A stretch of DNA of 62,664 bases from Vitrella brassicaformis CCMP3155 (Eukaryota > Protista > Chromerida), in the NCBI GenBank assembly GCA_001179505.1, contig CDMY01000506.1, positions 1 to 62,664 of the forward strand. The letters run 5' to 3'. The notes beneath the pieces were generated by a model. The model did no database searches. It was not told the DNA's origin and saw only the letters and a program-made list of their open reading frames with translations. Both the position numbers and the translations under genes were made by a program. Below, one piece after another: positions 11,896 to 20,292 of the stretch; positions within the stretch are counted from its first letter, which is position 1, and every line of letters starts with the position of its first letter.

Positions 11896-14800
11896 TCATG
11901 TCCGTCTGATGGGCCTGACCTCCAAGCCGCGTGGCTTGTACCTGAATGCAATGGACGGAGGCAGGGAGGAGACACCACACCCATCGTGGGCATTGGCGTG
12001 GCTCGTTTGTGTGCCTCTCTCCCTCCCTCCCTCCCTCCCTTAAGGTTACGTGATCGAGAAATACGGCTCGGGCGGCTTCGTCACCTCAAAGACAAAGCGG
12101 CTGAACAGGGCCGCCATCGTCAAGCGAACCTGACCAGACAGACGAACAGACAATCCACACACACACACACACACAGTTGAGTGAGTGACAACCGTATACA
12201 TGTGCTGTCTGATGTGTCAGAATGACTGGCTGACCTCGATCATGGCCAGATTGGAGCCGATGCTGGTGGGTGGACGCCACAGAAAGAAACACACCCACAC
12301 AGGGCAGTGTTTGTTCCATTCAGATGTGGATGGTCTGTCTTGGGCTGGTGACTGACTGACTGACTGACCATGATCTTGGCGGGATGCTGAACGGCAGGAA
12401 CGTCTTGTTGTAGAGCTTCAGCTCCTCCTCGGTCGCCTCCAGCCAACGCTCTGGGCGAAACACCTTGCCGTCGCCCCATCTGACCACACACACACACACG
12501 CCCCGACACGGACAGGGACACATGAGACCCAGGAGTGTAGTGTGTTCGCGTGTATGCCTCTGTCTGTGTCGCGCCTCACATTCTGTCGTCTCTCATTCCG
12601 GCCAGAATGGGCGTGCCAATTTCGCATCCGCCAGGAATCCAATAGTCCACGCCGCGGGAGGTGACCTTGATGCCGCCCTCAGTCTTGCGGAAGCTCCCAT
12701 TCGACGCAACGGGTGTGCTGACAGACAGACAGACAGACAGACGTCACAATGCACACACGGACGGGTGTGTGTGTGCGTGTGGGTGTGGTCGGTTTCGGCA
12801 TCTGGCTTACAGTCTGAGGATCTCTTTGATGCACGCGTTGAAGTAGGGCAGCTGACTCAGCTCCTCGTAGGTGGGCAGCTGACCCGCGAAGCTGGCACCA
12901 TCCAGCTCCTGAACACCAGACAAACATAACACGATTTCACACTTGAAGATCGCTCTATCATCCATCCATCCATCAGGCTGAGTGACCTGTTGCATTTTCT
13001 TGAGGACTTGTGGGTTGGTGGAGAGGTGGTAAATGCCCCAAGAGATGGTGTAGCCCGTCGTGTCGTGCCTGCATCCATCAATGGACACATGGAATGAATG
13101 AATACATCATGAACAGCAGCGCTCGCCTCGCCAGCTGGAGCACACGCGTGTGCCTATTGTACGTGTATGTCTATCTATCTATCTACCCACCCGGCCCACA
13201 GCAGGTTGTAGATGTCGCAGATCTTCTCGAACTCACTACACAGACACACACACACACACACACACACATTCAGACACCAGACGACGAACGCATCGCATGA
13301 GGTTGTTTGTATGTATTGCTATCTGTGTGTGTGGCTGAGTCACTGACGACGGGTAGGGAGCCTTGTGGATGTATGCGATGACCGACGTGGTCTGCAGACC
13401 AACCACCCCACCCAAACACACAGACAGACACACACATGCGCACGCCCACACACCCACTGCACAGCGGCCATGCTTCTCACGTACGTCTCGTTTGTCGGGC
13501 GGTGTGTCGAGATAGTTCCTGTAGATCTTGTTGCACACGTGGCGGAACAGCCGCAGGGCCTTGTAGTACTTGCGCACATGACTCAGCCAGAACATGTAAG
13601 GCCTGCACATACACGGCGTACGCCAGCACATAGGAAGGAAGGCGATTCTCTGACCATGCGATGTGGGGTGGATGCGTGTGTACCTGAGTGGGACCAGGAC
13701 GGTGCATCTGGTTTCGTAAAAGATGACTTCGATTGCGTCCAGCACGGCCAACGCCTCGCCATTGCGCTTCTCGTCGAATGCGTGCAACGGATAGCTGACA
13801 CACAGACACACAGGCCACACACCGGACACGAATGAATGAATGAATGAACGAGCGGATGAGCTCTCGTGGGCACATACTTGAATGCGACTTCCCCGATCAT
13901 GTCGAGAGTGAAGCGGGTGGCCCACTCGGGCATGTTGATGGACTCGCCCTGCTCGGCCGCGCCATCGATGGCCTTGCAGAAATCGCCGATCACACGGTGG
14001 TAGATGGGCGTCTTGCTCACGAGGGTCTTGGTGCTGAGCCAAACAGGACACACACGAAACGACGACCATGGAGTCATCTCTCCGTCTGCCTCTCTGTCTG
14101 TCTGTCTGTCTGTCTGTCCCACTGCCCTTGCTACATACGAGAATGCCGGGCTGAGGGCCTTCCTAATCGCATGCCAATTCTCGCCAGCCGTCTGCACAAG
14201 ATCAGGAAGGAAGAATTGGCATGTCTTGTCTGCCTGTCTGTGTCGGTGGACTAGCTCAGGTTACCTTGCGCGTGATGATGCTCAACGTGGAGGTGAGGGC
14301 ATTCTCCTTGAAGAGATCGAACGCGTGATACTTGTCGCTCTTGTCGAGGCCGTCGCTGCAAGAAGCGAGATAGGCATCCACTCCAGGAAGGGACGAATGC
14401 ACAGATGACATGCAATCAGTGCATCTCACGGTCCGATGAGGGTGTCCCAGCAGGAGATGTCGGTACAGATGTATATCCTCTGGCCGAGGGGCAGCTGCAG
14501 GTAGAAAATGTCGCACCCGAGCTTGTCGCGCCATTCCTCATGCCTGCACACACAATCACACCCCACACAGGGAGTGAGAGAGAGCCACGTGCATGTGCTT
14601 GTGGGCAATAAGCTTTCTGTGCAAGGCTGTGTGTGGAGGGGGGGGGGGGGCNNNNNNNNNNNNNNNNNNNNNNNNNNNNNNNNNNNNNNNNNNNNNNNNN
14701 NNNNNNNNNNNNNNNNNNNNNNNNNNNNNNNNNNNNNNNNNNNNNNNNNNNNNNNNNNNNNNNNNNNNNNNNNNNNNNNNNNNNNNNNNNNNNNNNNNNN

Positions 14801-15316
14801 NNNNNNNNNNNNNNNNNNNNNNNNNNNNNNNNNNNNNNNNNNNNNNNNNNNNNNNNNNNNNNNNNNNNNNNNNNNNNNNNNNNNNNNNNNNNNNNNNNNN
14901 NNNNNNNNNNNNNNNNNNNNNNNNNNNNNNNNNNNNNNNNNNNNNNNNNNNGGGGGGGGGGGGGCGCTTCTTACATGTGCGGCTCTTTGCCTGCCATCAA
15001 GTTCTTCCACATAGTCTCCATCGACGTCGGCACGCCTACGAAAAGCACAGCACCATGCAATGACAGACAGTGATCAGTCTGCATGACTTGTGCGGCCATG
15101 CTCACGAGGGGGGTCACGCAGCTTTCGCCTCTCCTCTGCCGATATCTGGCGTGCGCCCTGCCGGCCGCCCTGCTTGCCATCCTTGGCTGCATGCTTGCGC
15201 CGCACCCGAATGAACTCCTCGAGGCCGACGAGGCAGACCACGCCGGCAGAGAGGGCGGCGACGAGGGGCAGCACGGAGGAGGCGGACTGGTCGAGGTTGG
15301 TGGTTGATGCCGGCAT
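11896..15316 (-). CDS. Cytochrome P450
   Basis: N-terminal hydrophobic anchor, C-helix WHAIRKALSPAF, I-helix AGHDTTG, ExxR (KEILRL), PERW, heme motif FSIPPRSCIG (spliced TG|C), C-terminus SITYKPRGLEVRPIRRT*. About 15 exons and one N gap. Confidence 0.95.
14652..14951. other. Assembly gap (300 N) flanked by poly-G
   Basis: 300 N between G runs, inside a P450 intron region. Confidence 0.99.
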
Positions 15317-16950: not shown

Positions 16951-17089
16951 AAGTGCCAGCCATTCCGCCATTCCCCCTCACAGCAAAGCTCGCCAATTAT
17001 AAGCTCGCATTCGGAGCTGCGGCAGAAAATTGACGAGGCTTCAAAATCTGCAGCTTCACCGTCATCTGTTTGCTGACCGATCTCCCCTC

Positions 17090-19048
17090 ATGCATCCGTC
17101 AAGCGAAAGCCCTGATGTTGTCGCCGCGAATGGCGGCCACTCAAGCGTCCCTGCGGCCGAGCCCGATGCCCTGTCGCCGTGTCCGAACGTGGAGGCGAGG
17201 TTCGACGACCGCCCCTGCTGGTACCCGGGTGAGGTGATGGACATCCCGGTGTTCGCCAAGGACGATGACCCGGTGCCCGTGAGGTTTGAGGACGGCGGGG
17301 AGAGGAGCGTGCCTCTCAAGTGGATCAGGAGGGCACCCGTCAGCATGCCAGACCCCGCGTGGTACGATCATACACTGACTGCATCACTCACGCAGGCAGC
17401 GGATTGTGTTTGTGTTTGTGTTTCTCTGACTGTCTGTGTGTCAGGGCGCCCCAGAGTGGCGAGAGGGTGGAGGTGTATTTCGCGGCCACATCGGACGCTC
17501 CCCGTCACTGGATGACGGGTATCATCTCGCATGTCGAGGAGGGCTTCCACTTCATCAACTTCCCGCCCCACAGTGGGGAGCACTGCCAGCAGATGATCTT
17601 CGAGAAGGAGCACCTGCGGCCCGTCTACGAGGAGTCGCCCATCGACCTCACCAAGCTCAGCAGGCACCTCCAGCCCCTGCCAACAGAGCTACACAACTGG
17701 GCCGTGTCAGCCGATGGCCGCGCCTGCTTCCTGCAGGTGAGGGAGCAGGCGGCCCTGCTGCAGATCCAAGTGAGGGACGGCGACAAGCTCCTGCTGCTGG
17801 GCACCACCGAGGCAATCAAGCGGGCGGAGCTCATGCTCAAGGTGCACATCAAGCACCAGAAGGAGATACAGGTGTTCCAGGAGCGACGCGAGCGGCGGCT
17901 GAAACTCCTCGAGGAGCGTCGCGTCAAGTACGAGTCGAGCCTGACCTGTGAGTTCGAGGCCGACCAGAGCGTCGTGGGCGTCATGATCGGCAAGTCGGGA
18001 GAGAACCTCGCTCGCATCTCAAAGCAATTCGGGGTAAGGAAGGAAAGCAGCGGACAACAACACACTCATGACTGTGTAACTGTACTGCATGGCTGTCAGG
18101 TCGAGATTCGTGTGTTGCCGGCTGGTGCTGAGGGCAGCACGCACCGCATCGTGCGCATCTTCGGTGAGTCCAACGACAGTGTGCAGGCGGCCCGACAGGA
18201 GCTCGAGTACCTCTCGCACTCGTACCCCGTCGAGCGCAACATCTGGCACTGGATGCTCAACCAACAGGGGGTCTCTACCAACGACCTCAAGCGGAAAACG
18301 GGCGTCAAACAGGCCACGTACGTCACGAAATGCGACAGAGGGGAAGGCACAGAGAGATCATTCGCTGAGCGGTCGCTTGTATGAGTGTGTGCAGGTATGA
18401 CGATGCCCAGCAGTGCGTGGTGCTTCAGGGCAAGAAGGCCGCCATCGACGACGCCATAATGCTACTCGACAGCCACAAGGAATACTTCATGGTCAGATAC
18501 AGACATACATACATCAACACGCGGGACATGTGTCGACCCTGCAGGTGTATGAGAACATGAACAAAGAGAGCGAGGAAATCCAGCACAGATTCGAAGACGT
18601 AGGCACCAACAGCCACAGCTAGCAATCCAATCCCACTGCTTCCGTCCTTGTTGATCAGCTTGAGGTGCGTGCGGGCCCCCGGGGCGGTCCCCGTGGCCCT
18701 CGCGGCGGTCGGGGCGGCAGGGGGCGAGGTCTCCCCGAGCCAGGCGGCAGCGACGCAAGTGCTGACGCGGACAGAGGGGGGGCCAACCCAGAACACGGAC
18801 ATGGGAGGGGTAAGGAGATAGACACCACACAGAGAGGAGCCATACAACCATTGATCGACACCCTGTCTGAGTGGATGGGCATGACACGTGCAGGTGGCCC
18901 TCCCCGTGGCGGTCGTGGCGGCCCTCACTACGGCCCCAACCAGCTGCCGCTGAGAGGGGGAGGTGGACGGGGGAGGGGCGGGCCGCCGAGGGGCGGACAC
19001 AGAGGCAGGGGGAGCAACGGCATGATGACGGCAGAAGGGGCAGCATGA
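17090..19048 (+). CDS. FXR1-like: FMR1/FXR-like RNA-binding protein (2 Agenet/Tudor, KH0, KH1, KH2, RGG box)
   Basis: GERVEVYFAATSDAPRHWMTGIISHVEEGFHFINF matches Agenet 2. KRAELMLKVHIK matches KH0. VVGVMIGKSGENL matches KH1. IFGESNDSVQAARQELEY and AIMLLDSHKEYF match FMRP blocks. The C-terminus has RGG/RG repeats. Confidence 0.88.
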
Positions 19049-19718
19049 CTCAGCAAGACTAGACGAGGTGCCGGGTCATGGATCGATCGACTGTTCGGTA
19101 TTTGTGTGTGCGAGGGCATGGGACGACATTCGTGCGACGGTTTTGTGCCCGCGAGAATGTGCTTCGTTCACCTGTATAGCGAGAGCTAGATGATAAGGGG
19201 AATAGTGCTTGCGATACATACGTCACTCTAAGTGTCTCTGGGTGGGGAGTCGGCTTTGTCATGTGCGATGTCTGTCTTGTGTGGACATGCATCTATCTCT
19301 GCGTGCCGTCTCACTTCTGCTACAAACATTGATGCCCGCTGTTCTCACTCATCGACACCCTCTCTTCCCGCCTGTCTGCTTGGCCGCGGACAGGCGGGCC
19401 GAGATGGTGGTGGTGGTCGTGTGCAGCAGGCATCAAGGCAGAAGGGAGCCTGGCCGCTGGTGACTTCGCAGGAAACTGTGCAATGAGTTCAATGCGTCCG
19501 GTCGACACTCTAGCTGGCAAATTGACCGTGCTGCCGTCTTGAGACTGGGGGCGTCTCAAGAGATTCGCTTCCTCCTTGAGTCGCAATCGGTGAGTCGTAG
19601 AGCACGTGTGCTGACGTTAGTGCCGACATGCCACTGTCCATTGTCTTTGCTGTGTGTCCGCGCAGGTCACTCCGTGCTTACAATCAGCCGGCTCTGAGTC
19701 CCCAATCAGTTGTCCGCA

Positions 19719-20292
19719 ATGAAAGGCTCAACGGCGTCGGTATCGCCAATGGTTGGCCCTGGCCGCTCCCCTTCCCTGGAAGCGTGCCTGTGCTACTTAC
19801 TGCACGCCATCAGCATACTCACCGCCCTGCTCATCATCGGCAACGGCCTCCTCGTCATTGTCTGGTACGTGTGGGGCCCCGTGCTCTTCTTCGTCAACTG
19901 GGTGGTGGCCGTGGCCCTCCTCTTCTTCGGCGGCCTCCTACTTGCGGCGGACCTCAAGTGTGTAGAAAGGATGGGCTATTTCCCCTTCCTCTACTCATGT
20001 AAGCAGCTGGTGCATCGATGGGATGGTCTCTGTCTTGCCTGCATACAGTGCGTGTGTGTCGATGTGGTGTCTTGCAGCTGTCGGCCGGGGCCTCTTCATC
20101 ATTTTGTGCGGCCTGCTGTCGGTCGATCTTTCGACACTCTTCGGCATCGCTGCTGGTGGCCTGATCACCGTGCTGGGCGTCGTCTACTGCCTTTTGGGCG
20201 GGTGCTGGCTGCAGGGCTGCCCCAAGCCGCTGCTACAGAGGAACGAGCGGGTCATATGTCTCACCACGCACATCAACTTCATCGACTTCTGA
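19719..20292 (+). CDS. TVP15: COPI-associated / TVP15-like Golgi membrane protein
   Basis: Four hydrophobic segments and the family motif YFPFLYS/SVGRGLFIILCG across a phase-1 intron. Confidence 0.8.

Follow-up and report, generated by a model that had tools for sequence, protein, structure and literature searches.

Can a family whose origin a 2013 review placed in the cnidarian-bilaterian ancestor, and which the same review held to be missing wherever a nervous system is lacking (PMC4216185), have a member in a single-celled alga? The question is raised by positions 17090-19048 on the plus strand of contig CDMY01000506.1 of Vitrella brassicaformis CCMP3155 (assembly GCA_001179505.1); the window analysed is that whole contig, 62,664 bp. 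The stretch is bounded exactly by the start and stop codons of a real gene, and a preliminary description of the DNA had read in it the full architecture of the fragile X proteins. Our findings support a model, to which we give a probability of roughly 85%, where the gene is a divergent and genuine member of the FMRP/FXR family, inherited within alveolates, whose product would act in cytoplasmic messenger ribonucleoprotein particles (mRNPs). The protein has all of FMRP's structured core, with order and three-dimensional arrangement unchanged, followed by an RGG-rich tail. Its parts are as follows.

17189-17332, plus strand: Agenet/Tudor domain 1, residues ~34-81, traced from the strands of an AlphaFold2 (AF2) model and aligned with Tudor 1 of FXR1, FXR2 and FMRP
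17458-17622, plus strand: Agenet/Tudor domain 2, residues ~96-150
17656-17847, plus strand: KH0, placed by AF2 (predicted local distance difference test score, pLDDT, 94), by Foldseek matches to 4ova and 4qvz and by the alveolate profile
17848-17937, plus strand: long charged helix joining KH0 to KH1, residues 226-255
17941-18204, plus strand: KH1, residues 257-322, with a canonical GKSG loop (Pfam KH_1, E 3e-15)
18208-18479, plus strand: KH2, residues 324-388, with a degenerate NQQG loop
18480-18661, plus strand: last helix of KH2 and the long C-terminal helix that prolongs it as far as residue 411
18665-19045, plus strand: Arg-Gly-rich tail of 99 residues, with 10 RGG, 16 RG and 36% Gly

The domain order Agenet-Agenet-KH0-KH1-KH2-RGG, as first described, is thus borne out by structure prediction and sequence. 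Agenet 2 carries W113, near-invariant across the family, and R149, invariant across it. In KH0 the loop between helices 1 and 2 is reduced to two residues and has no GXXG, and the KH0 of FMRP likewise lacks this motif (PMC9603430). The GKSG loop of KH1 is a canonical GXXG, which 84 of 91 family representatives retain, the helix after KH2 aligns with the corresponding helix of animal FMR, and the 99 residues with their RGG and RG repeats lie beyond that helix, at the C-terminus. The same domain order and fold occur in animal FMRP, FXR1 and FXR2 (4qvz, 4ova, 2qnd; 3kuf; 3h8z) and in invertebrate FMR1: the likeness takes in the tandem Agenet, the GXXG-less KH0, the helical linker, the relative orientation of KH1 and KH2, the long helix after KH2 and a disordered tail rich in Arg and Gly, with ~370 collinear columns in all.

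This likeness is carried by sequence over the full length. When residues 30-410 of the protein (P0001) were compared by phmmer with 1.84 billion cluster representatives, 714 proteins were matched at E<=1e-3, and 220 of these also pass E<=1e-10; many of the matches extend over the full length, from residue ~40 to ~410. Named animal proteins are among them: barnacle FMR1 (1.2e-20), cuttlefish FMR (1.9e-18) and an aphid FXR1-like protein. BLASTP aligned the cuttlefish FMR with it collinearly and in one piece (43-411 against 9-400, E 3e-24, 21% identity). Against the PDB, phmmer found no Tudor-type matches besides the Tudor pairs of FXR1 and FXR2, and aligned KH1-KH2 of FMR1 (2qnd) in one stretch spanning both domains. 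The four family blocks that had been quoted as FMRP-like are present and align with FXR1 or FMR1 chains: GERVEVY..PRHW with GDEVEVY..PCGWW of FXR1, IFGESNDSVQAARQELEY and AIMLLDSHKEY with the matching blocks of 2qnd, and the KH0 block with animal FMR. Reciprocity, fixed in advance as one of two tests on which the assignment could fail, was found in both directions: P0001 leads to named animal FMR1 over its full length, and four animal FMR/FXR queries reach P0001 at 1e-8 to 1e-30 in a local phmmer search, while matching none of the hnRNP K or FUBP proteins of that local set, which comprised the proteins gathered in the analysis and not a whole proteome. The similarity is therefore collinear, reciprocal and directed to FMR/FXR rather than to other KH proteins, and at E 1e-18 to 1e-20 among 1.8 billion proteins it lies far beyond chance.

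Profiles extend the comparison. To avoid circularity, one profile (A4) was built from 56 sequences of the alveolate clade only. Against the PDB it recovers human FMRP Agenet1-Agenet2-KH0 at 1.4e-30 (4qvz, residues 5-214 covered), the Tudors of FXR1 at 5.6e-26 and of FXR2 at 3.7e-24, and KH1-KH2 of FMR1 at 8.9e-25; the best other KH protein stands at 2.5e-14, which leaves FXR chains 10 to 16 orders of magnitude ahead of other KH proteins. Aligned by hhalign with an animal-only profile (A5), it gives a probability of 100 and an E-value of 2.3e-46 over 370 columns, from Agenet 1 through the helix after KH2. In language-model features, too, the Vitrella protein adjoins FXR clusters.

The predicted structures, AF2 models made with family alignments for residues 30-262 and 250-412, tell the same story. 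For residues 30-262 (pLDDT 94.3, predicted template modelling score, pTM, 0.81), the top six PDB matches found by Foldseek are human FMRP Agenet1-Agenet2-KH0 crystal structures, 4ova and 4qvz included, with 203-214 columns on targets of ~200 residues, E 6e-13 to 3e-10 and template modelling (TM) scores by target of 0.65-0.69. FXR1 (3kuf, TM by target 0.83) and FXR2 follow, and then the plant tandem-Agenet readers AGDP3, ADCP1 and AGDP1. Against this N-terminal model, the ESM-Atlas predictions for FXR clusters score TM 0.70-0.73 over ~217 residues. Thus, both the tandem Agenet pair and the packing of KH0 with Agenet 2, two hallmarks of the family, appear in the model. For residues 250-412 (pLDDT 95.6), two type-I KH folds and a long terminal helix are predicted. 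Several tandem-KH proteins have similar Foldseek E-values here, and FMRP 2qnd is the only tandem-KH structure that superposes on both domains (TM 0.58/0.65, root-mean-square deviation, rmsd, 4.7 Å, 26% identity). The eukaryotic tandem-KH proteins IMP, FBP, Nova, PCBP, N4BP1 and KHNYN deviate by at least 9 Å, with TM ~0.32-0.41, and the next nearest structure is archaeal Dim2p (rmsd 6.1-7.4 Å, TM 0.40-0.46). The modelled KH1-KH2 pair therefore has the FMRP-type arrangement of its two domains.

Relatives are numerous. In alveolates, haptophytes and Rhizaria together, the cluster representatives of the family run into the hundreds, which of them can be named depending on which cluster representatives carried names. 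Named alveolates comprise Vitrella itself (CEM00681.1), Chromera velia (Cvel_18060), Amoebophrya (CAD7927320.1 and CAD7955380.1), the dinoflagellates Yihiella and Symbiodinium and the apicomplexan Digyalum oweni, gregarine-like apicomplexans being among the lineages represented; a haptophyte cluster (Scyphosphaera) and the cercozoan Mataza belong neither to alveolates nor to animals. With other alveolate proteins the identity is 30-37% over the full length. The second Vitrella protein, CEM00681.1 (P0015, 583 amino acids), is encoded on another contig (131 kb) and goes under the name 'Agenet-like domain-containing protein'; its tail is RGG-rich, and no glycine remains in its KH2 loop, ERDS. A word-index protein search returned one relative with a piece of the window, mostly animal FXRs with a mixed profile and nothing new with the alveolate-only profile, a result that does not speak to absence in model apicomplexans or ciliates.

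The 103 proteins of an unrooted maximum-likelihood tree (LG+C20, quick search) fall, with 100% support, into two groups, one of 59 rows that holds all the identified alveolate sequences: the Vitrella pair, Chromera, Digyalum, Amoebophrya, Symbiodinium and Yihiella. Both Vitrella paralogues fall within a chromerid plus apicomplexan-like subgroup. On the other side, the animals are monophyletic (99%), the haptophytes form a clade of their own (98%), the rhizarian sits in a further clade (98%), and there are long branches without a placement. This is consistent with vertical descent and excludes a recent origin from an animal. The phylogeny, also called for at the outset, thus puts the Vitrella protein in an alveolate clade inside a family whose every member shares the architecture. 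The initial claim of an alveolate orthologue holds for an FXR family member in an alveolate clade; 'orthologue' is loose, given two Vitrella paralogues and an unrooted family tree. The occurrence in alveolates is likewise confirmed, and the family is not solely alveolate, being found in haptophytes and Rhizaria as well. Two further observations concern sequences outside the alveolate group. P0098, P0110, P0119, P0132 and their neighbours, metagenomic or Logan sequences, group with Mataza in a non-animal clade of good support; Pfam Tudor_FRX1 and Agenet recognise its members, as KH_9 does weakly, and at the N-terminus these proteins look more like animal FMRP than the alveolate ones do. P0179, from the brown alga Laminaria digitata (1494 amino acids), has many Tudor-type domains and is matched by the mixed family profile in its Agenet part only; its architecture is not of the FXR type.

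Could the resemblance have another source? An FMRP-like protein might in principle be put together convergently, from a generic KH protein that independently gained Tudor-like domains and an RGG tail, and domain-library scans taken singly leave that impression. Pfam, run on single exons and on the whole of P0001, passes KH_1 only (E 3e-15), with Tudor-type matches that are weak and scattered over several families; exon by exon there are only the two halves of KH_1 and weak matches to assorted Tudor families, and exon 2 searched alone against the PDB found no FMRP chain. Moreover, KH1 by itself scores equally well against FUBP and FMR1. This apparent refutation from single exons was overturned by the full-length, profile and structure tests. 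One collinear alignment runs through five structured domains and both linking helices, the FMRP-specific KH0 without GXXG sits at the same place with the same packing, and the FMRP-type geometry of KH1-KH2 and the profile scores given above add to this. FUBP/KSRP, IGF2BP/IMP, hnRNP K, PCBP and Nova share the canonical type-I KH, to which KH1 alone is about as similar as to KH1 of FMR1, but have neither Agenet pair nor KH0, and their tandem KH domains superpose with an rmsd of at least 11 Å. We therefore reject convergent domain assembly, contradicted as it is by the structural match to FMRP and by the alveolate-profile comparisons, and regard it as very improbable. Still further down we would place the idea that animal DNA contaminated the assembly, or that the gene was recently acquired from an animal, a reading with nothing to recommend it beyond the family's known animal distribution. 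The gene lies mid-contig among ordinary Vitrella genes, in a 62.7-kb sequence, with the same G+C as the rest of the window; the protein is only 21-23% identical to animal proteins, against 30-37% to other alveolate ones; its place in the tree, with 100% support, is among sequences of Chromera, apicomplexans and dinoflagellates; and Vitrella has a second paralogue. Contig position, identity, tree and paralogue together lead us to discard both versions of an animal source.

Membership of the FMRP/FXR family, on the other hand, has to accommodate a number of observations that weigh against it. The identity to animal FMR is low, at the 21-23% just given. Pfam Tudor_FRX1 (PF18336) and FXMRP1_C_core (PF12235) have no match in P0001, and KH_9 (PF17904) reaches only E 0.13, over KH2, which is the wrong place; these three are animal-trained diagnostics and not structural features, and several non-animal relatives do pass Tudor_FRX1, and one KH_9. 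The KH2 loop reads NQQG, in place of the GKNG of animals and of the canonical GXXG of human FMRP. Asn at the first position of this loop occurs in two of 91 family representatives, and most alveolate relatives keep the first glycine that the Vitrella protein has lost. Both loop glycines are retained in only 35 of the 91, the last one being often lost, and a named animal member, the aphid FXR1-like protein, also deviates (GKNH); thus the KH2 loop does not decide family membership. Between strands 2 and 3 of KH2 the Vitrella protein has 16 residues, compared with 28-48 in animals, and therefore lacks the animal KH2 variable loop. The tail, too, calls for caution. A tail with at least three RGG is present in only 6 of 59 alveolate-clade representatives, the other 53 differing in this from the Vitrella protein, and such tails are concentrated in the chromerid plus apicomplexan-like group (both Vitrella proteins, Chromera and the GHVS record). 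The tail may have arisen independently, homology to the RGG box of FMRP not being demonstrable in low-complexity sequence, and the full 'FMRP-like' look may be due in part to the parallel gain of such a tail. The C-terminus is also shorter than in animal FMRP (99 versus about 260-280 residues), the N-terminus has an extension of ~30 residues, and the host is unicellular and photosynthetic. Finally, the tree is unrooted and made by a quick method, with poorly resolved deep branches.

What would such a protein do in Vitrella? By analogy with the rest of the family, it would be a cytoplasmic mRNP protein. RNA would be bound through KH1, with its intact GKSG loop, and through the RGG tail, the latter taking up structured or G-rich RNA or perhaps contacting ribosomes. 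Binding of proteins or methyl marks, and self-association, would fall to the Agenet pair together with KH0. KH2 is probably a weak or different RNA binder, or mainly a structural partner of KH1, because the first glycine of its GXXG is lost. Through these contacts, the protein could control how a set of mRNAs is translated, stored or localised.

The main functional rival accepts the homology and differs on the role: a true FXR homologue could work chiefly in the nucleus, as a reader of methylated proteins on chromatin via the Agenet pair, or as a factor for the assembly of RNPs or ribosomes. Plant Agenet proteins and a reported chromatin role of FMRP offer precedents. In the structural comparison the matches next after FXR are the plant histone readers AGDP3, ADCP1 and AGDP1, and the RNA-binding loop of KH2 is degenerate, both of which point this way. 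However, the canonical GXXG of KH1 and the strong RGG region are RNA-binding features, and the conservation of the whole FMRP core as a unit suggests a conserved core activity. Nor is the likeness to the plant readers extensive: AGDP1, AGDP3 and ADCP1 share the tandem Agenet fold, over residues ~30-160, and are matched weakly by the alveolate profile (E 1e-5). Their architecture of Agenet cassettes without KH0, KH1, KH2 or RGG tail is not that of the Vitrella protein, which carries all three KH domains. The plant proteins act on chromatin and, to our knowledge, are not RNA binders. We thus consider a mainly nuclear or assembly role unlikely, if well ahead of convergence or an animal source, and retain the cytoplasmic mRNP protein as the preferred reading.

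The gene itself is transcribed and spliced as annotated, since the spliced forms are seen in RNA-derived contigs. It has seven exons and six introns, all of them GT..AG, and the open reading frames of the six frames across 17,000-19,100 are broken up in the manner of a spliced eukaryotic gene.

17090-19048, plus strand: coding region, for a protein of 511 amino acids identical to the database record P0001
17090-17361, 17445-18033, 18100-18317 and 18395-18491, plus strand: exons 1-4
18545-18598, 18659-18809 and 18894-19048, plus strand: exons 5-7
17023-17089, plus strand: 5' untranslated region, minimum extent, from the starts of transcript-derived contigs
17362-17444, plus strand: intron 1, 83 nucleotides, GT..AG, removed in contigs of runs X1, X6 and X7
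18034-18099, plus strand: intron 2, GT..AG, within KH1
18318-18394, plus strand: intron 3, GT..AG, within KH2
18492-18544, plus strand: intron 4, GT..AG, within the long helix after KH2
18599-18658, plus strand: intron 5, GT..AG, within the same helix
18810-18893, plus strand: intron 6, 84 nucleotides, in frame, GT..AG, within the RGG tail

Translation of the spliced coding sequence gives P0001 exactly, in a local identity check; the record, reached by a word-index search with the stop-free stretch 17320-18381 of the window, bears the label 'unnamed protein product / K Homology domain-containing protein'. All six introns are gone from contigs derived from complementary DNA in three public runs (X1, X6 and X7, from at least two studies), and the same stretch is present unspliced in a genomic run (X3). 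Transcript contigs start at 17023, 17046 and 17068 and extend beyond 19300 at the 3' end; being assembled contigs, they show splicing and carry no information on expression level. Beside the spliced form, contigs of 141 nucleotides (18782-18922; runs X6 and X7) read straight through intron 6. If retained, this intron, in frame and without a stop, would add 28 residues inside the RGG tail; the contigs could be a retained-intron isoform or carry-over of DNA or pre-mRNA. Two RGG-coding stretches, 18703-18723 and 18904-18921, have further matches on another genomic contig and in transcripts from elsewhere, and near-identical Arg-Gly-coding repeats therefore occur in other genes of this genome. The neighbouring genes, examined over 7090-29048, show no functional link to the FMRP/FXR-like gene.

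about 12046-15316, minus strand: cytochrome P450
about 19719-20292: COPI-associated protein
minus strand: unnamed gene, 954 amino acids
from about 24684: DNAAF5-like HEAT/TPR protein

How new is this? In the literature searched, which left most subscription journals outside its scope, no paper on a non-animal FMRP/FXR homologue was found. The expectation that alveolate relatives would be filed as generic KH proteins proved right; a few already have automatic names, namely Symbiodinium sp. CCMP2456 CAE7808101.1 ('fmr1, partial') and a Perkinsozoa cluster ('Fmr1-b protein'), so annotation pipelines had already met the similarity. The novelty is tempered by these names, and the role proposed for the Vitrella protein derives from its family; the protein is of real evolutionary interest and brings no new mechanism. 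The placement of the family in the 2013 review is contradicted by an FMRP core in a photosynthetic relative of apicomplexans. With a true full-length FMRP/FXR relative in an alga, one of a large protist family, the family is therefore much older than the animal nervous system. A more specific scenario seems to us evenly poised: the complete Agenet-Agenet-KH0-KH1-KH2 core would have been present in an early eukaryote ancestral to animals, alveolates, haptophytes and rhizarians, and lost later, for instance in yeasts, with an ancestral role in mRNPs and translation kept in Vitrella. The origin of the family is moved far back, its core biochemistry is separated from neuronal function, and the enigmatic KH0 and the packing of Agenet and KH0 emerge as ancient and conserved. 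If this ancestry is true, alveolates would be usable as unicellular systems for the mechanism of the FMRP core, including a KH2 without the GXXG loop.

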